Below are positions 5,201 through 26,375 of a stretch of 64,000 nt of DNA, in pieces. Numbering within the stretch: the stretch's first letter is position 1; every line of letters starts with the position of its first letter. The position numbers and the translations under genes are program-made. The stretch comes from Klebsormidium nitens (taxonomy: Eukaryota > Plantae > Klebsormidiophyceae). The notes below the pieces were generated by a model that was not told the origin of the DNA, made no database searches, and saw only the letters and a list, made by a program, of their open reading frames with translations. The DNA lies in the NCBI GenBank assembly GCA_000708835.1, contig DF237373.1, positions 15,803-79,802 of the forward strand. The letters run 5' to 3'.

Positions 5201-8200
5201 GCCAACGTCCCCGCTTTGGGGAGGCCACTCCGCAAACCGGGGGGTGGCCGGGAAGGGTGCGGGACCCCCCCGCGTGTAAAGATCAGGGGCCTGAGGAGGT
5301 GTCATTTCCGCGGGGTAGCGCCCGCGTGCAGGAGAGCAATCGGAGGAGGTGCTGGTCTCGGTCTCTGTGCCGGACTCCCGGAGCTCGGGAGAGCAGACGA
5401 GGTGCAGGCGGCGCGCCTGATCACGGAGACTGTGGTAAAGGACCACGGGGTTGAAGGCGCGGCCGGCCCCGCGGCGGTGCTGGGGGGGGGCGGCGGTGGC
5501 GTGCGCAGTGATGAAGGCCTTGGCACGGGCCCTGGAGAAAGGGGGTTCACGGTGAGACACTGGCAGACCTTCTGAACCTGACACAAGCGACAGAGCATGG
5601 CTGTCAAGATGAGACTGCTGCCTCCGTGGATTTGGAGATATGCAGTGGGGATGAAAGAAGCGACGTAGACCATGATGGCAAAAGGGCTGTGAAAGCGGAA
5701 TGAGTAGATTCTGTCACAAGCATCATGGTTCACCAAGTGTCGGCAAAGCAATCAACCTTTCCTAGGTCCACCACAACTCGAGCTACAGTTGTCGCGTACG
5801 AAACAAACCGCGCCACCCGAATTGTGAGCATGCTGCGCCAAGTGAGTCTCTGGTGATGACGAGTCGGGAGGTTCGTAAGGACTTCTTACCTCAAGAAAGG
5901 CAGCTCCAAAAGCTCTGAGGCGAGGGGCCGATGCTGCGGGTCGAGCGTGAGCATGCACGCGACGACGTTCCGAATCTCGGCACTATAGCTGGAGGCAAGA
6001 AGGTTTCGAAACAGTCAGCAACAGCGCAGTTAAGGATAGTCGTCCTGTTTGAAGCCGCCAGAAAACCATAACATTCCAAAAACGTAATCCGAGGACTTGG
6101 AGGAGTCAAATAAGCGGCCGTTCAGCTGGTTGGTAATTGCAAGCTTATTTCTGTTTGATTGGGCACGGAGTATACGTTTTCAATTAGCAGCAGAGGAACA
6201 AATATGAAGCAAACCTCCATCTTTCCACTTTTCTCCCCTTGGACCACAGCTTGTATCCTCAAGAAGAGCTTGCAGAGACGATTCTAAGGAGCAGACATCT
6301 GATGTCGTTGAGGATGAGACATCAACAATTGCAGACCACATCTTTTCAAGTGATGGATATGGAAGAACGACCTATGGACGGAAGCCCAAGAAGTCGACGA
6401 TAGGTTTCTACCTTGATTGGATTGGGGGGTAGAGGCCCCTCGTGACCTCTGCCGCAAGGTCCGGAAAGTTTTTCGCTTTGAAGGGTTGCCGTAGGCAGAG
6501 CAACTCGTAGAGAACGCACCCAAGAGCCCAGATATCTGTCAACCACAAGAAGAGTGAGTTAGTAGGTTAGACAGCCCTGCAAAACTCAAAAAAACTTGCC
6601 AATTCAAAGCAAATGTGTCCCCCCAAAAACCGTGCGCAATCATGAAGTCGGCAAACATGTTGTCTGCTGTGAACATAGGAGCGGCCAACAGGAAGGCCTG
6701 CGAGCATTCCCAACCTGTGCAATCAAACGCTGTGCCTTTGCAATCTGGTAGAAAGGCTTCAATGGCTTTTAATCAAGATACCAAATGCATGCACCTCACT
6801 GGAAGGTGTAGATGCATACATAGCTAAGCAGAATGACTTACCAGTTTTGTAATTGTAAGGTCTCCCCTTGAACAACTCGGGGGACATGTAGTATGGCGTC
6901 CCGACGAACGTTGAGGCTAGAGCGTCAGATGAGTCCAACACACGAGCTATGCCAAAGTCCTGTGACATAAACAAAAGAACATTAGGAAGGCCTCACGGCA
7001 GATAGGTAAGGCAGCTGAGGATGTTTCCGCAGAAACAAGCACCTAAAGCAAATGGATTTGAGGGCCAGGAAGTGTCAGGCATATAGCAACAACAGGTTCT
7101 TGTCGCATGCAAGGGTCACGCTGGTTGCAATGAAGGACCTTGCTTGCATGCAAGACGACCTCACCCCCAATTGTGCAGTGATGATCTGAGGCCCCCCACT
7201 GAGAGGTTGATGCAAGAAGATGTTCTCAGACTGCGATACGGAGGAGGCGCAAAAGGTGAGATGAGCGAGGAGTCAAGAGGGGCAAGGGCACACGAATGGG
7301 CGGAATAAAGGTACCTCAAGAGCCAAGAAACTTTCGTAATAGGTATCAAACCTGCTCTTTAGCTAACAATGGCATAAGCAAAAAGGAGAAACAGAGTTGT
7401 CAGAAGCAGCCCTCTGGCCACGTTTAACCTCATATTGGGACTGAGGGGTTCAGAAGAAGCTGGGCATGACCTTGAGGTGACGAAATCAGAACAATCAGAC
7501 CCAATAGTTGGGGGAAGGGGGTTAAATTCGTACCTTGATGTCTCGATGCAGAATCCTCTGCTTATGCAAGTACTCCAGCGCAAGAAGAGTGTGCACCAGC
7601 CAATCAGTGACAAGGTCCTCTGGAAAGCTGCAAGCACAACAACAGTCCAGTCAGCACAGGCCTCTTTTTTAGGAGGGAGCCTTTGAACATCCCCACTCTG
7701 TGTGGGGTTCAGCGATGCACGAGACCAACGCGGAAATCTGTGAAACCCAAGACTGAACGGTGGGGCATGCATTGTACAAATAATCCTGAAGGGCGGGGGG
7801 GAGGGGGGTGGGGTCCTAGTAGAAAAAATAAAGGGGAAATTGTGTTGCATGAACAACCAAGGGGGGGTGGCTTTGGAAACGCTAATCTCCTTCAGCCAGC
7901 ACAAGGGGCTACCTCTGAAGATAACTCAGCTCTTTGCAAAACTGTCTCGATATACACCAATGGACAATTCAGAACCAGCAGGGGGGTCCTTGCAAAGGTC
8001 TTCGTAGGGAATCAATCTGGTCGGGGTTTAACTTCATCCAAGCTCAAAATATCTCCAGATCCTAGACCAGCCCTGCCCGAAATCACACAGAAGTATGGAA
8101 AAGCGATAAACCTCACCTTTGTCCCAACTCTGCCTGCTGCTTGATCCGCGTGCACAAGTCGCCGCCCTTGCAATGCTCCATGACTGGGGAGAAACGAGCA

Positions 8201-17969: not shown

Positions 17970-19041
17970 TGTGCCTCGAGCCTCGTTCTCGATTCCTGAA
18001 AGGGCAAGGAGGCTTGGGCAAGAGCTGAAGCTTACGGGCGCCGAAGGCAAGAGCGGACAGGAGAAAACAAGCCTGCTCAGGGTGGAAACCCGTCAGTTTT
18101 GCACCAGCAGAAACCGACGAAGTGAGCTGGACTTCAGATCCAAGAATTCGAAGTGCACGACACCAGCTGTCACTTGCCAACTAGGGGTGCGGTAAATACG
18201 TGCACTGAGTTCATCCGGTAGCTACAAAAGTTGGCGTCTGAATTGTTGAAGCTTTACCACTTAATAGTAGCCAATCCTAATAGTACTCCAGGTTTGCCAG
18301 CGAACGCATAGTCCTACCCGGCCTGTCTAGAATGATCAACAAGTCCCATGCAACGCGGAATAGAAACAGGCAGACCGAACACGCCTATCCATTCAAATCC
18401 GGTCATGATCCACAGATCCAGTTTGCCATCCATACGATAGCATGTATAGACATGCACAATGTTCTGAAAAAAAGTTCGCCCGAACTCTATGTCCTCTCTA
18501 TGTTTGTACTTCTATTTCTCAACACATATTCCTCACGAAGTCAAATCCTTGCATGGTTTTCTATTAGTCATGGAAAATCGTGCACGAAGCAGCTGCTTGT
18601 CCGAGTCTGATAAGTATACATTAACGCATTACGAAAGAAGACTGAGAGGGCAGAATCTGGTCCTTCCAAGTGGTTCCTTGGAACTGAAAAACTACTGATT
18701 GTAACCAAGGATGCACTTGTGTGAGCTATGTAGGCACCGTCGCATTCGCTAAGGTAGGGCTGTTTCACTTGTCAAAGCAAAGTAGCCATCGGTGCAAACA
18801 TTGATGAGGACAGCCTAGGAAACCGCAAACGTGAAGCACCAAGATAAGCTAGATAACTTAGGTCACGAGGGACTTAGACTTAGAATTGCGATCTCTCACA
18901 ACTCACAACAATAAACGTTCTAGAAGCAACACCAAGCGGGCCAGACACGTTTTGAACTTCAACAACTCTGCTAAGCATGCACGAGTTTGATCACAACACC
19001 AGTAGTTTACGACTTTAGATTACCCGTGTCCCCTGCGGTGG

Positions 19042-22000
19042 TCATGAATCTTCTTCCTCTTCCTCCCCGGACAGCCAGCAATGCGCCGAGTCCCCGCTCA
19101 CTTGTCCGTCCTCCACCCAAACCGGCTTCGGCACACCTTTCACTTTGAGCAGAAACGATACTACACCCTCGGGGGAAACCCGCCGACCCCTCACGAAGTC
19201 GACCGCGCACTGCGTCAACCCGTTATCTTGCGCCTTCCCGATCGCGCGTTTAGACTTCCCCTTCTTCGCAGCAGGCTGCGCCTTGACGGTTTCGGACATG
19301 GAAACCTTGGGCTCCCGTTTTCGCTTCTTTGGGGGGCTGTCAATTGACGGCTCCTTGACTAGTGCTGCGCCCCCCTGGTCCGAGTCGGCGCTCACGGGAA
19401 TGACCTCCTCTTCCCCCTGAAAGAGGACGGACTTGAAGTAAGAGGCTGAAACAAGCATATACGCGCCACTTTGTCGAGGTCCGGCTTGGCTTTCTTCGGA
19501 GCCTTATCCCTACGAAGTCCCAGTGCAAATCAAAATCGGACAACTAACACTGTTGACTAGACCGCAAGGTTGCAGGCGCGGAGGCAGAGGATTCAAAGCA
19601 AAGCAGATCTGACGGCTTACGTCGTCAATCTGGACCTCGTCGCCCTCCCCCTCTTCGCCCTCGAGCGCTGCGGTCCCGTCCCTGTCGGCCCGCACGATGT
19701 GCACCTTCACCCGCCACTTCTCCTGCAGCGGGGCAGGATCCGTCGAACGTGAGCAGTCACATAGAAAGCCTTGGGGGCATTCAACGGTCCGCTCATCGAC
19801 TGCCGTTACGACTCGAGCGGCGACCGGGGTTCCAATCAATTTCGCATTTTCAGGACGATTGTATCGAATTCAGACCGAAGTAGAGCCAGCTACACGTATC
19901 ATAAGAGACCACTTCCCGAAGACTTCAATTGGGTTCTAATAGAGGCACAGGTTGAGCTTACAGGTCGATGAACATGTGGAAAGAACTTTGCTAAGGTTGA
20001 TTGCGAATATGATAGCTTTAGAGCCTTATCAAGGGAGGGCTAGTTCTCAAGAAGCTTGATTTGTGGGAAAGAAAAGTTGCAGTGTTCGAACAGCAAACGC
20101 TTGAGTGGGCAGGCAACATTTTTTGTTTCTGCTCTCCAGGAAAAGAAGGTCTGGATATGAACCAAGGGATTCTCCTCGGGGGATTTCGAAGAGCGGCGAA
20201 AGCGAAGGACTCCTGGGAGAAAGAGCGTGGCGCTTCGTTCAGTTACCCGATTACACGACTGCCGAAAAGAAAAGGACAAACGGAAACTTTTCATTGCCGG
20301 GGAATGCAAGAGAAACATGCACGCAATTCTGTGTCCAGGTGTAAGAGTTAAGTCCAGGACTCCAGCTCAGATTTTTGTCGGTGCTTTCTCTGCGATTTGT
20401 ATGTTTGAGGCCTTCATTTTTTCAATGCACGTCCTCTAAAGGGAAACGGACAAAAAAACAAGAAGCAGAGTGAGGCAGCGCCCAGATTGAGAGCCTCTAC
20501 GAAGACGTTCTGGCCGGCCCTTTGCACCACGGACGATCGGTACAGAAAAGTGAATGTTGATACAGGAAGCTTCATACACCGGAAAGCGAGAAAGGTCAAT
20601 TTGGCGCCTCGTTTCAAGCTCAAGCACGATGCGAATCCTCTCCTCCGACACTTACGTAAGACAGCTACCTCGGTAGCCACCAGCTTTTTCCTGACAACCG
20701 TCGACACTGTGACGACACTTCTTGCACCTAAAGAACCTCGTCAATCTCTGAGCGTCAAAATTCAACGTCTTCCGCAACAAACGTTAGGGTCTGTTGGCCC
20801 AACAAGGCTGCCGCTGCTCCAACAGCTCTCAAATCGCGAACCGACAGCTGTCAGAGAACAAAACCCAACAGCTGTCAAAGCGAAACCGACAGCTGTCAGC
20901 TCTCTCGCGCGCCAGCTGTCACCTCTCCGCGCGGTTCAATCACTTCAAACACGCAGCAGTCCCCGTCCCCCAGGTCGTGGTCTTTCGCGAAACCGCCCCA
21001 CCCCCCGCTCAGGCCCGCACGGCTCGGCTTATACATAACCTCCCAGCTTTCTCCGTGCTCGTCTTCGAGGATAAGCAGGCCGTCGCGGTCCCCTGGGAGG
21101 TGGTGCTGGCAGAAGTGCGCCTGTAGATGCTGCGGGAAGGTCCGGGGAGGGGGGTAAGGGACGGGGCTGCTGGCGGGGGGTGGAGAAAATAAAGGTTGAA
21201 AAGTAAAAGGTAGGAAAAGGGCGGGGAAAGAGTAGAAAAAAGGAGGGGGAAAGGGGCGAGGAAAGGAGAAATGTACCAAATCGAAATGAAAAGGAAAAGG
21301 AAGAGAAAAGAGAAGAAAAGGAAAAGGAAAGGGAGAGGGGAAAAGAGAAGGGGGGAAAGAAGAGAAGGAAAAAGCAGGAAAACGAAGAAAAGGATAAGAA
21401 AAGGGGGGAGAGGGTCGATCCGGGCATTTAGTAATGAAGAGGGTGGTCGTGACAACTGGGGTGTAACTTGGTTGGGAAAGAAAGTCAATTGTTTTGGGTA
21501 TGGAGATTGGCGGCGCGCCCTGAGCCCCCACGCGAGCGCGCGCCCCGACCTTGTCGACGACCTCGAACTTCGCCGCGTCCCCGTCGTCGAGCCCGTGGTC
21601 GATCGCGAACGCGCGCCAGCCGCCCGAGAGCGCGCCCCGCACCGGCTTATAGACCGCCTCCCACTCCCCCCCCGCGGGGCCCTCGAGCAGCACCGCGCGC
21701 TCGTCGGGGGAGAGATGCGCGTCGCAGAACGCCCTGTCCAGATTCTGGGGGGGAGATACATGTTTCAGGAGCGAGTTTAGGGGTTGTGAGTTTGGGGCTG
21801 GGGGTTCTGAGCAGGCCCCGTGATTTGGAGGAGAGTAGAGAGAAAAAGGGGGGTGTTAGTTTGGGGGAGGGTGGGTTTGTCAAATGGGGGGGTGGATTTT
21901 AGTGGGCGCGGAAGGGGGGGGAAGCGTGTCACCTTGTCCAAAACCTCGAACGCGAGTGCGTCCCCGTCGTCGAAGCCCTTATGGATGGAGTAGCCGCGCC

Positions 22001-24942
22001 AGCCGGCGCTTAGACCTTTCTTACCGCCCAGGTACTTGCACTCCCAAGCCTCGCCGTCGGCGTCGAGGAGCGTGACCCACACGTCGTGGCTGGGCATGTG
22101 CACGACGCACCAGTCGTTGGGCCATTGCTGGGGAAACGCGGGGGCCATTATCAAAATTTGCGTTGAAAAGTATGATTGATTGGACTGACGAATCTGGACT
22201 AGGTAGTGAGGTTTTTGTTTTGGGGACCTTCACATCTATGACATTCTCTATGCATATCGTTTGGAGTTTCTGAAGTGCGGGGACCGCAATGAGTTTCTGT
22301 CCGGTATCTTGCAACGACGGCAAAGTGGGACGCGGGGTGAGAAGATGTTTCTGCAGTAGAGTGCAGATTCGAGAAAGGAAGAGGGAACACGGGGGCCCGG
22401 AACAAGTTTTGCCCAGTTTGATGCATATATGAACGGAAAAATTGAGAGGAAGGATGGAGTCGGAGAGGAAAAGAGCAGCGAAAGCGATTCCATTTGCGTG
22501 TCGCACTGGTCGCTGCAGACTGTCTCATGTGTGATTTAAAAAGAAAAGAAAGAAACGGAAGGAAGAGGAGGAGGGAAAGGTGTGGTATCAGGATGTGTGC
22601 TTGATGTGCTGATGAAAAGGGAGGGTGCGTTTAAAGTGACCGCGTACAAGTTCCAACGTTAAAGGTGGGAAATAAACGAGGGGGGCAAGCGTTCAGGGCA
22701 CCAGTGGTCGAAACGTTGCCCGGGGAACGACGCCTGGATGAAACGACTCTGCTCGTCGTCGAAAGCAAAAGCGGAAATGCAACAAACAGGTGTACGGATT
22801 TGATTAACTGGTGGACTACGTGGGGCTGCTAGAAAGAGAAAAATGGGAAACAGAAGAACTTGTATAGGTCAATACGGAAAAAGGAATGATGACGAGGCCG
22901 GAAGACAGATTGATCTGAATGAAAATCGTCATGACCCAAAAAGCATCGCCCCAGTACTAAGTGCCCTGATGAGACGTTCTTAAAGGATGCCAGACAGCGT
23001 TGCATGCTCTTCCGGCTCTTTCTGTGAGCGGTACGATTGAGAAGCAGCCAAACGCAACTAGAAAAGCCTTTGTATCTGGAGAAGCCGTTTTTCACGAAGT
23101 GCCCGCTTGATCATCTTTCAAGCAAAAAAAACTTGTGACAACGTCGATGCAAGCTTCCCTAGTGCTTACAAGCACTATCAAAGGATGCTCGAAACCTTCA
23201 ATCTGAAGCGCATTGTAGACCGGAGTCCTGATAGATCAACCTTCCAGATGCTTTGGGTCGCCCGGAGTCGCCTCAAGGCTCTCTCAAGCTTTGACGGGTG
23301 TCCTTCCGGCTTCCCCGAACCAGGCACGTTTCCAGACGCTTGCAAACCTCATGAGAACAAATGGGCTTCACATAGCCAAAATGCCCGCTAGAAAATCCTT
23401 ACAGAGACTTTCTTGTTCGACAGTCATTTGAGCACATTTCTGCTACTCCGTGTATTTAGAGACTCTCGCCTTCGCAGTCCAAACCCGTCATACATCCTCA
23501 TGAGATAACCATAATAGTTTCCAAAGGGAAATTGGGGAGGGGAACGCATCATCCGAAAAAGGGACGGTGAAGTGTGTAGCAAAAGATCCCTTACCAGCCA
23601 GAAGCCGCCTGAGATCATCGACTGCAACAGTCGCTTCACAAACGCCGGTCCTTCCACCTTGATCGCATTAGCTCTCGCCTCTGCTTCATCCCTGGCTTCG
23701 TCAGAACACGTCGATGTGCCGCTGCGGGGCCGGTAGGGTCCCGCTGATCGACGGCCCGGCCCCCGAGTCAGCCGAAGGTGGTCGTTCCTTTCTTCTAGGT
23801 CCCTGGCAAAAGAAAAGGGCCGGTGAGCAAGACCAGAATCGCGAACAGCGGGACACTTCCATAGGGGAACGCACAAGCTCGTGAAAACAGGGTTACACAC
23901 ATGTGTATCCTGGTCGAACGCATGGCACCCCCATGTTGAGATACAGTAACACTCCATCAACAATTCCAGCCTGTCTGCGTGTCTGCGTATCTTCAACAGT
24001 GGCTCCAGTAAGTCAAGATCTTTGTCACCTCAGGAGGCAACTCTGAGTAGCAAGCTCTGACAAAGGAGGCCCTCCTCAAACACTGGCGACTTCAGCAAAG
24101 CGACGGAAGACAACGGGAGCCCAAAATTGAAAGACATCCTCACTTGTAGGACACAGCTGGCATGTTTTGGACTCGGCCCGACCGTCGGATCTCTACAATC
24201 CCGTCAACGCCGTGGGCTCCCAGGGAAGAGCGTCGCCTAGGGGCCTGCGGTTTTGCTCTGCTGGCTGCCAAAGCGTCTGCTGCGTCCACGATTCCAAAGT
24301 CCTGCCGAGCAAAAAAGAGACTTCCCTCAGGCTTGAAAACGGTGACATCGCGAAGGGGATTCTAGAGTTGTGTGAGGTTTCAAGCCTCACACAGTTCTCA
24401 AAGGCAAGCCCATGCCAAGGAAAGAAAGGAAATAGCTTGGGCTCCCGACAGATTTTCAAGCATCAGCTCTGCAAAATACGGTGAAAAGGGGATGACTTTT
24501 GCTTTGAATCCTTTTTCTGATGTTATTGAGGAATCGTTCTAATGGTGACGCTCTTCAGAGAAAGCCCACTGAGAGTCTGGACACGAAGATGGAGGGCGGT
24601 GGGGTACAGGACCTCTCCAACATTGGCCCCGTGTTTGTTTCATCTCTTATGGAGAACTCGTTCAGATAGCCTACGATTGTGCGAGCTCGTTATGTCAGAA
24701 AGGGGCGCGACAAAGCCGACCACTCCTCTGATGCTTTCCCTACATTGAAGCGGGGACCCCAGGAGACCGCACCAAAAGGCGTCAATCTTGCAGGACACGG
24801 GTTGAATCCCCTGCCCATCATGCCCTTTCCCTGAAAGGAGAAACCAACTGACCTGCAGGTGGCGCTCATTTTCCTTGATTCTCTCCTGGCGTTCTAACTC
24901 GATCTTGGAGAGCTTTGCCATGGAGCTGGCTGGAGCCTGCAT
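19042..24942 (-). CDS. B3-domain DNA-binding protein (REM/At5g42700-like) with three alternative B3-core exons and a C-terminal chromo-like domain, about 375-379 aa if one core exon is used
   Basis: Seen: exons 24942-24853 (MQAP...ELERQERIKENERHLQ), 24301-24144 (RRSGRVQNMPAVSY), 23802-23595 (AFVKRLLQSMISGGFWL), core A 22127-21933, core B 21744-21550, core C 21129-20923, 19722-19621 (EKWRVKVHIVRA), 19416-19042. Knowledge: FVKxxLQSxxxGGFWL, LSxGWxxF, DxxxFEV and KVHIVRA are B3 hallmarks, and an RxxRIxEN / RRSxR..P.Y N-terminus is typical of this subfamily. Confidence 0.88.
20843..20922. repeat. Four-copy ~22-24-bp-period repeat of palindromic (G)ACAGCTGTC
   Basis: Seen: cagctgtc-containing units at 20843, 20867, 20888 and 20912. 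The last copy overlaps the donor of B3 core exon C. Confidence 0.8.
21170..21420. repeat. Polypurine (+) / polypyrimidine (transcript) low-complexity tract
   Basis: Seen: about 250 nt of almost only A/G on the + strand, in the intron between B3 core exons B and C. Confidence 0.9.
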
Positions 24943-26375
24943 GGAGCAAAAGGGAACTGCATTTGGCCCTTGTCAAGGACAGGTTTGGCAAGACTGTTTC
25001 CGTAGAGTATGTATGAGGGACGGTGATAAATTGTAACAGCTTGGACCTGCGGTAACTCTCTAAAGCATTGTGTGGGTACAATTGTGGTCCATCTTTTGAG
25101 CCACTGTTTCTGTAGAAACAAAGTTACCATCCTCTCGTCAGAAATGCTTTCATCAAGAAAGGCCCTTCCTTTCCTACTCTTGACGGTGGGTGCTGACATC
25201 CAATGCTGCAGCTCCAGAAAACTGCGCGGAGAAGCCTTTCATTGTGACAATGTCGTCGCAAGCACAGAGCTATCAGAGAGCCACATTGCATGAGCTTACT
25301 CACTGGGTTCTTACAAAGAACAAGACCAGGGCAAACTGCCTAGTTACAAATATGTCTCATGAGACTGCACCATAGCAGCTTCCAAGCATTCATGATCAAG
25401 AACAAGTGCAAGCTGTTTGGTCATAACGTGTAAGGGAAAGTACCTATAATCCAAACAGTCTCAGAAACAGCTCATGGTGACTAGCATTTAATCCATTCCG
25501 TCAAAGATCCGAGAAAGTCAACCCAATGTTGATAGGTGCCTAATCTAGAGGTGGGCAGCCATGGGCGGACGCTTAGGTCTTGTGAAGTGAACAACAGTGT
25601 GAAATCGTTGCCAAACTTCAGATGGGACCTTGCTTCTAGTCCCCGAGTGAACAAAAATGTCGAGAATCCGCGTATACTAACTGCAAAGCAATGCCGGTTC
25701 CTCTGCCTTCATTTCTGAAGAGAGGACTGAGCAAGATTGAGGCACATCGTCGACGCTGGCAAGTTAGTTGTGCTACAGACCTTGATGTAGAAGTGAAGAG
25801 GTCCTCGGTGTATCCTGAACCAATTTCGTTCAGCTAAAGCAAGCGCTTGGTAATTCCCCTTTCAATAAGTGCTCAGCCTATTCCTCTGACGTCAGCAAAT
25901 TGGGCGCCCGATCACTGCACGCATTGTCTGTCCTAGCGCCGTTGCCACTGCTCCTCCGATTCGGCTCCCTCCCTGCCTATGCTGAGCACAATTTCTGCTG
26001 CAGCAGTAGAGGCAAATTGAGGGTGCTCGTTCTCACGTTGCACTGTCTGATGTTCTCTTCTCATAAGCCCGTACCCATCAAAGGCATGGGGCTGCTACGA
26101 CAGTGTAACCTGTCGTAGGGAGCACTGAGGTGCTCGGGGATTGCACGCAAGATTGACACTATTGGGAACCTGGAGCCTGCACCAAGCAGCGCGACCCCGG
26201 TAGCAGAGACGCTGGCCTCTCGCTCCGGGACACCGGGCGAGACTCAGTGTCAACCTTGCGATTGTTTCCGGGCCAACCTTAATAGCAAAAGTATTCTCGT
26301 TTCCATGAGGTGTGAAAAGGATCAACGGTCACATGTGCTTAGTTGGCACAACGTCGCCCAATCAAAAAGCACAAT

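Follow-up and report, generated by a model that had tools for sequence, protein, structure and literature searches.

A probable one-of-several choice of B3 core exon in a transcription factor gene of Klebsormidium nitens

The gene KFL_004240060 of the streptophyte alga Klebsormidium nitens, identified by protein search, lies on the minus strand of a 64-kb window (the whole stretch of DNA analyzed here, 64,000 nucleotides (nt), whose coordinates are used for all exon positions). It carries three tandem homologous exons, A, B, and C, each of which holds the core of a B3 DNA-binding domain, flanked by the constitutive exons e3 and e7. In RNA a two-way choice between A and B is observed. It is probable that the gene makes a factor with a single B3 domain and a chromo-like C-terminal domain by choosing one of several core exons, with A or B used alone and C likely as the third alternative. 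The public gene model (P0001, 521 amino acids) instead reads e1-e2-e3-A-B-C-e7-e8, with all three cassette copies in tandem. A literature search turned up no paper on the gene. A three-way mutually exclusive cassette had been proposed at this locus from the DNA letters alone (the original prediction).

The triplicated core exon and its use in RNA

Exon A (21933-22127, 195 nt), exon B (21550-21744, 195 nt, donor GTCGGG), and exon C (20923-21129, 207 nt) all lie on the minus strand between e3 (23595-23802, minus strand, ending in ...SMISGGFWL) and e7 (19621-19722, minus strand; EKWRVKVHIVRA), which is the acceptor exon for all three donors. They are similar in length, share phase 0-0, and have their own AG and GT borders. 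Amino-acid identity is 38% between A and B, 35% between A and C, and 49% between B and C, and the loop of the B3 core reads LGGKKG, KPVRGA, and KPSRAG, respectively. The translations of the five exons described in the original prediction are exact, as are the borders, lengths, and phases of A, B, and C. The same prediction gave e3 as phase 0, which is right for its 3' end, on a codon boundary, but not for its 5' end, where the first base of this 208-nt exon is the third of a split codon. Since e3 ends on a codon boundary, the phases of the cassette junctions are unaffected.

The division of the domain among these exons was examined with the Pfam B3 profile (PF02362, 101 positions, curated cut-off 30.1 bits). 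Exon A matches positions 32-85, B 20-86, and C 20-87. B (38.8 bits), C (56.4 bits), and the whole of P0001 (115 bits) score above the cut-off, and A alone (25.3 bits) and e3 joined to A (29.0 bits) fall just under it. C is the best profile match among the cassette exons, and both B and C keep every B3 core residue. e3 covers positions 1-19 of the profile, the cassette 20-87, and e7 88 onward; joined exons cover 1-85 (e3+A) and 20-97 (C+e7). Therefore the first strand is supplied by e3 and the last by e7, and the core alone is triplicated. This agrees with the strand assignment of the original prediction and with its claim that any single cassette exon completes one B3 domain. With a single cassette exon between e3 and e7, the reading frame stays open and is 368 (A), 368 (B), or 372 (C) amino acids long. 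In a six-frame search of the whole window, the first-strand, core, and last-strand segments had no additional copies. In REM proteins, where whole-domain repeats are the norm, each repeat holds all seven strands; here the first and last strands are single copy and only positions 20-87 are repeated, so the gene is not of that type, as had been argued.

RNA evidence came from assembled contigs of four public runs (X1, X7, X14, and X18, from four studies), compared with positions 19000-24960. In such contigs rare variants are dropped, strand is absent, and ends lie about 30 nt beyond each junction. The first intron (24373-24770) had zero depth in all four runs, and the contigs carry GT..AG junctions; the coverage is therefore not DNA contamination. 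The constitutive junctions 24300>24852, 23801>24143, and 19415>19620 were present in every run. Every predicted exon border proved to be a junction base in the contigs (for exon C, at its donor), and the cassette junctions were all GT..AG at the predicted bases.

On the upstream side, e3>A was found at a depth of 114 in X1 and 49 in both X7 and X14 and was not seen in X18, and e3>B was found at 75 in X1 and 14.5 in X18 and was not seen in X7 or X14. On the downstream side, A>e7 reached 50 in X1 and 49 in X7 and X14 (not seen in X18), B>e7 reached 36.8 in X1 (not seen in X7, X14, or X18), and C>e7 was present at 15.8 in X14 (not seen in X1, X7, or X18). X7 and X14 each have one contig (877-879 nt) that runs through e1-e2-e3-A and 27 nt of e7. 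Exon A is thus used in three runs (X1, X7, and X14), with B used as well in X1, and X18 uses B. In X18 e3>B is present and A has zero depth, so that the exon used varies with the sample rather than reflecting a fixed ratio. Junctions between cassette exons (A>B, A>C, or B>C) were absent from the contigs of the four runs, which drop rare variants. These were the junctions on which the proposal of three-way exclusive use depended, and it stands for two of its three exons: A and B are each joined to e3 and e7, switch from run to run, and are not joined to another cassette exon, but for C only C>e7 was recovered, with e3>C and the use of C as sole core unseen.

Part of the RNA from the locus is incompletely spliced. 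In each of the four runs, unspliced RNA covers positions 19725-21578 at 25-60% of exon depth; the e3-A intron has mostly low depth, and the other introns of the gene lie at 0-10% of exon depth. In X1, e3>A (114) approximates the sum of A>e7 (50) and the unspliced A-B intron (36), and e3>B (75) approximates B>e7 (37) plus about 42 unspliced. These depths add up if the intron between the cassette and e7 is removed slowly, and the region 19723-21578 looks slowly spliced or detained. In X18, the B-C intron is retained at a depth of 11.8 against 14.5 for the e3>B junction.

Conservation and competing explanations

The gene was found on three further contigs, two of them (L001 and L002) from related taxa. 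L001 is a metagenome contig on which eRF1 lies downstream of the gene, as in the window; L002 is a Logan contig with the whole gene; and L003 is a short contig with e7 and e8 only. The original prediction proposed a search for the cassette in other algal B3 orthologues; in both L001 and L002, exons A, B, and C follow one another as in K. nitens, and their AG/GT borders are the same. The weak GTCGGG donor of B, also pointed out in that prediction, is identical in L002. Amino-acid identity to K. nitens is 94% (A), 83% (B), and 90% (C) in L002 and 74%, 77%, and 58% in L001. Identity between exon types (35-50%) is lower than that within a type across taxa. In a tree of the three taxa, the exons group by type into one clade each for A, B, and C (support 100/100, 97/96, and 93/88), which shows that the triplication predates the divergence of these three Klebsormidium-like taxa. 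Two metagenome scans with exon-A and exon-B alignments found no relatives; they missed L001 too, and its sample is probably outside the collection. The N-terminal half, used in a protein search, recovered the L001 open reading frame alone and no isoform proteins derived from transcripts. L002 also contains, upstream of A, an incomplete duplicate of that exon, comprising sequence from its 5' part together with the acceptor (6639-6712, 80% identity), and K. nitens has a fainter exon A relic at window positions 22383-22412. On sequence grounds, the two appear to be traces of further exon duplication.

Ratios of nonsynonymous to synonymous substitution rates (dN/dS) were 0.12 (A), 0.26 (B), and 0.14 (C) against L002 and 0.28, 0.22, and 0.21 against L001. 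The range of 0.12-0.28, together with conservation in three taxa, indicates purifying selection, as had been suspected from the intactness of such diverged copies. The constitutive exons have similar values, from 0.04 to 0.18, and the introns are unalignable with L001 and about 53-61% identical with L002. The synonymous rate (dS) against L002 is 0.27-0.43 in the cassette exons, 0.67-1.2 in e1, e2, e3, and e8, and 0.47 in e7; on these small counts, the lower cassette values would fit an extra constraint on alternative exons.

Several points weigh against single-exon choice. Tandem inclusion of the cassette exons keeps the reading frame. As the contigs are strandless and have lost rare variants, the absence of A>B and B>C is weak evidence. 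The e3>B and B>e7 junctions are not phased on one molecule, and the B form in X18 is seen solely with the downstream introns retained. The case of C is affected most: e3>C was not found in the contigs of the four runs, and the sole C>e7 contig (X14) is unspliced upstream through the B-C intron and exon B into the A-B intron, so that a premature stop would arise at 21777 in this RNA. Moreover, a crude scan of K. nitens and L002 for docking/selector duplexes gave nothing above locally shuffled controls, with best worst-of-three energies of -13 to -19 kcal/mol against -19 to -20 for the shuffled sequences.

The B-C intron bears on the role of C. In K. nitens only, this 420-nt intron (21130-21549, minus strand) is stop-free and in frame from B to C, which follows from its richness in C and T (about 78%). 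In L002 the intron is 389 nt, which shifts the frame, and in L001 an early stop interrupts it. A B-linker-C protein, in which the retained intron would join B to C, was accordingly rejected as a conserved product. Since the intron is not readable through in L001 or L002, C can be translated there only through its own acceptor, and the protein-level constraint on C implies that this acceptor is used somewhere. By analogy with A and B, its donor partner would be e3, and C shares border type, phase, and length class with both. C is thus most likely a third alternative, used in conditions outside the four runs, and a three-way switch is likely.

The strongest competing explanation, though an unlikely one, holds that A alone gives a working protein and that B and C are regulatory or decoy exons, which direct RNA into intron-retaining, premature-stop forms and lower the output. 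A complete spliced contig was seen for A only, the e3>B RNA of X18 keeps the B-C intron, the C>e7 contig of X14 is unspliced upstream, B has a weak donor whose weakness is conserved, and unspliced RNA is abundant over 19725-21578 in every run. However, B>e7 in X1 is not far below A>e7 (36.8 and 50), and decoys would have no need of dN/dS values of 0.14-0.26 or of a full set of B3 core residues, which B and C have, nor would the best B3 profile match be expected in C. A slightly less probable alternative is that only A and B are switched, and that C enters mRNA, if ever, joined to A or B (A>C or B>C) in a two-core protein and not by itself. Such joining would account for an active C donor without e3>C and would make use of the C acceptor, which is needed for translation of C in L001 and L002, but A>C and B>C are equally absent from the contigs, one core of the protein would be left without a first and a last strand, and the borders, phase, and length class of C are those of exons A and B. 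The annotated tandem, with A+B+C in series as the main product (502-521 amino acids) and single-exon junctions as minor by-products, is very improbable: although all exons are phase 0-0 in one open frame, the public model P0001 has this form, and purifying selection on all three exons would suit it too, no junction in the contigs of the four runs supports an A+B+C transcript, A>e7 and B>e7 rank with the deepest junctions, contigs read e3-A-e7, three cores would share a single first and a single last strand, and the A-B intron of L001 (50 nt) is below the minimum known for plant introns, about 60-70 nt. The public tandem model is not supported by the RNA contigs.

One-of-several choice of a core exon therefore remains the preferred explanation. 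The gene product would be a nuclear factor in which a single B3 DNA-binding domain is combined with a chromo-like domain at the C terminus. The exon for the B3 core (strands 2-6, both helices, and the loop after the WxxxY strand) would have been triplicated in tandem before the three taxa diverged. Mature RNA would contain either A or B alone between e3, with the first strand, and e7, with the last, giving products of 368 amino acids each that have one complete B3 domain and differ in its core, the choice depending on the sample. C, intact and under selection with an active donor, would be the third alternative. Slow removal of the intron between the cassette and e7 would leave abundant partly spliced RNA.

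Candidate splicing elements and the rest of the protein

The manner in which one exon is selected was examined next to the known means of exclusion. Nonsense-mediated decay cannot enforce exclusivity, since tandem inclusion stays in frame. Incompatibility of U12-type with U2-type sites was ruled out, as all donors are U2-type GT. Inverted repeats at the locus are weak and of low complexity.

Two conserved intronic elements were found. The first is a branch-point-like element (..CCCACTAAA; 21898-21911, minus strand) located 22-35 nt after the A donor and conserved in three taxa. Its ACTAA lies about 20-35 nt downstream of the donor in all three and is extended to TACTAAC in L002. The length of the A-B intron varies from 188 nt in K. 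nitens and 288 nt in L002 to 50 nt in L001 (10166-10215), where it is not a multiple of three, aligns nearly throughout to the conserved stretch after the A donor in K. nitens, and has as its only branch-point-like sequence the ACTAA about 20 nt from the A donor. At 50 nt, A>B splicing in L001 should be sterically impossible, and the intron would thus block joining of the two exons in that taxon. In K. nitens, AG dinucleotides lie between the ACTAA element and the B acceptor, and a nearer CTAAAC candidate is present; with a 188-nt intron and these intervening AGs, steric exclusion is not evident there, nor is it in L002 with its 288-nt intron.

The second element is a cluster of palindromic GACAGCTGTC repeats directly after the C donor (20821-20922, minus strand; L001 10897-11094, L002 8055-8116). 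Four copies are present in K. nitens and five at the same place in L001, where 0.66 would be expected by chance. The array consists of three to five units with a period of about 21-24 nt and aligns across the three taxa, unlike the rest of the intron. As RNA it is predicted to form stacked hairpins (z -4.2); its role might be to regulate splicing, or it might be a DNA element resembling an E-box. A fuller proposal would be a regulated three-way switch of the B3 core, conserved from before the divergence of the taxa and enforced neither by decay nor by U12 incompatibility or docking/selector pairing, but possibly with the involvement of the ACTAA element and the GACAGCTGTC array. This proposal is tentative, and we hold it with somewhat less than even confidence.

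The remaining exons of the gene were defined from the same contigs. The 3' end of a 5' untranslated exon (25781-25812, minus strand, with GT after 25781) is spliced to 24936: loose contig ends at 24938 match 25783-25812 exactly in three runs. A second 5' end was seen in one run and is unplaced. Exon e1 (24853-24936, minus strand) was placed by the junction 24300>24852 and its reading frame was checked. The public model begins with MGWIHRGPLHFYIK... from an upstream exon, and the window there reads ...WFRIHRGPLHFYIK (25781-25830, minus strand), with no ATG. As the upstream exon lacks an ATG in the window, translation probably starts with MAKLSK at 24921, in e1. Exon e2 (24144-24301, minus strand) has junctions on both sides in all four runs, carries the motif RRSGRV...PAVSY, and is 90% identical to K. 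nitens in L002 and 67% in L001.

The last coding exon, e8 (19042-19416, minus strand), contains the stop codon (19042-19044), a basic stretch (PPKKRKRE), and the chromo-like domain, and its junction is 19415>19620. The C-terminal module VWVE..VS.DS.HCWL (19042-19250, minus strand) is conserved and also occurs in other B3 proteins (P0024 and P0042); it has no Pfam match. AlphaFold2 predicts a small beta fold for residues 70-110 of e8, with a predicted local distance difference test score of 84-89. In Foldseek searches this fold matched the chromodomains of CBX7, HP1, and cpSRP43 over about 40 residues (probability 0.9-1.0, root-mean-square deviation 1.5-2.0 Å), with weak E-values of 0.2-1. As a lead from structural modeling, the factor may combine a chromatin-reading module with a B3 domain that can be switched.

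Comparison with known systems

Outside Klebsormidium, the cassette is most similar to land-plant B3 proteins of the At5g58280-/Os05g0481400-like type (43-57% identity), and the closest solved B3 structure by sequence is that of the REM protein VRN1 (PDB 4I1K). The land-plant relatives share the N-terminal ...RRSxR...P.SY motif and are colinear with the single-cassette isoform. Those inspected have one core per domain or repeat the whole domain, and none has three copies of a core exon flanked by a single first and a single last strand. A moss relative (P0074; L005, Physcomitrium patens GCA_000002425.3, CM009336.2) shares the N-terminal motifs, has a single B3 domain, and is encoded by an intronless gene.

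In alpha-tropomyosin, exons 2 and 3 are kept apart by steric exclusion, the branch point lying too close to the upstream donor. The A-B intron of L001, at 50 nt with its ACTAA about 20 nt from the A donor, resembles this arrangement. The 188-nt A-B intron of K. nitens does not, and exclusion between B and C would not be explained by it in any case.

More generally, the cassette resembles the mutually exclusive exon clusters of animals (tropomyosin exons 2/3, ion-channel genes, and Dscam; Kassiopeia, PMC3923563) in that adjacent homologous exons of the same phase and near-equal length encode the same piece of a domain, exactly one is placed between fixed flanks, and the array is conserved across species. 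A and B show all of these defining features, and C shows all but one, e3>C being unseen. It differs from the animal clusters in its setting, a streptophyte alga and a plant-specific DNA-binding domain, and in that tandem inclusion stays in frame and cannot be policed by decay. Unlike Dscam-type docking/selector systems, no pairing above shuffled controls was found in K. nitens or L002. For plants, the Kassiopeia paper notes that reports of mutually exclusive splicing are rare in Arabidopsis and that its own literature search found none described (PMC3923563). Our literature search returned no report of such splicing for Klebsormidium, and confirmed clusters of homologous, mutually exclusive exons have hardly been reported from the green lineage. 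The K. nitens case would be a mutually exclusive duplicated-exon cluster in a lineage and a protein family where such clusters are essentially undocumented. It corrects a public gene model, and it offers a tractable case for studying how one-of-several exon choice is enforced in plants and algae although tandem inclusion would keep the frame.

A further parallel concerns the outcome of the choice. In Drosophila, lola, broad, and fruitless use alternative sets of 3' exons that encode whole zinc-finger domains. As in those genes, one K. nitens gene gives factors that differ solely in their DNA-contacting module. In contrast to them, the exon swapped in K. nitens is internal and replaces the middle of one fold, the first and last strands being shared. 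In a streptophyte alga near the land-plant stem, one gene yields, in a sample-dependent manner, at least two factors that differ only in the B3 core, and the locus offers a natural setting in which to ask what B3 residues determine DNA specificity.

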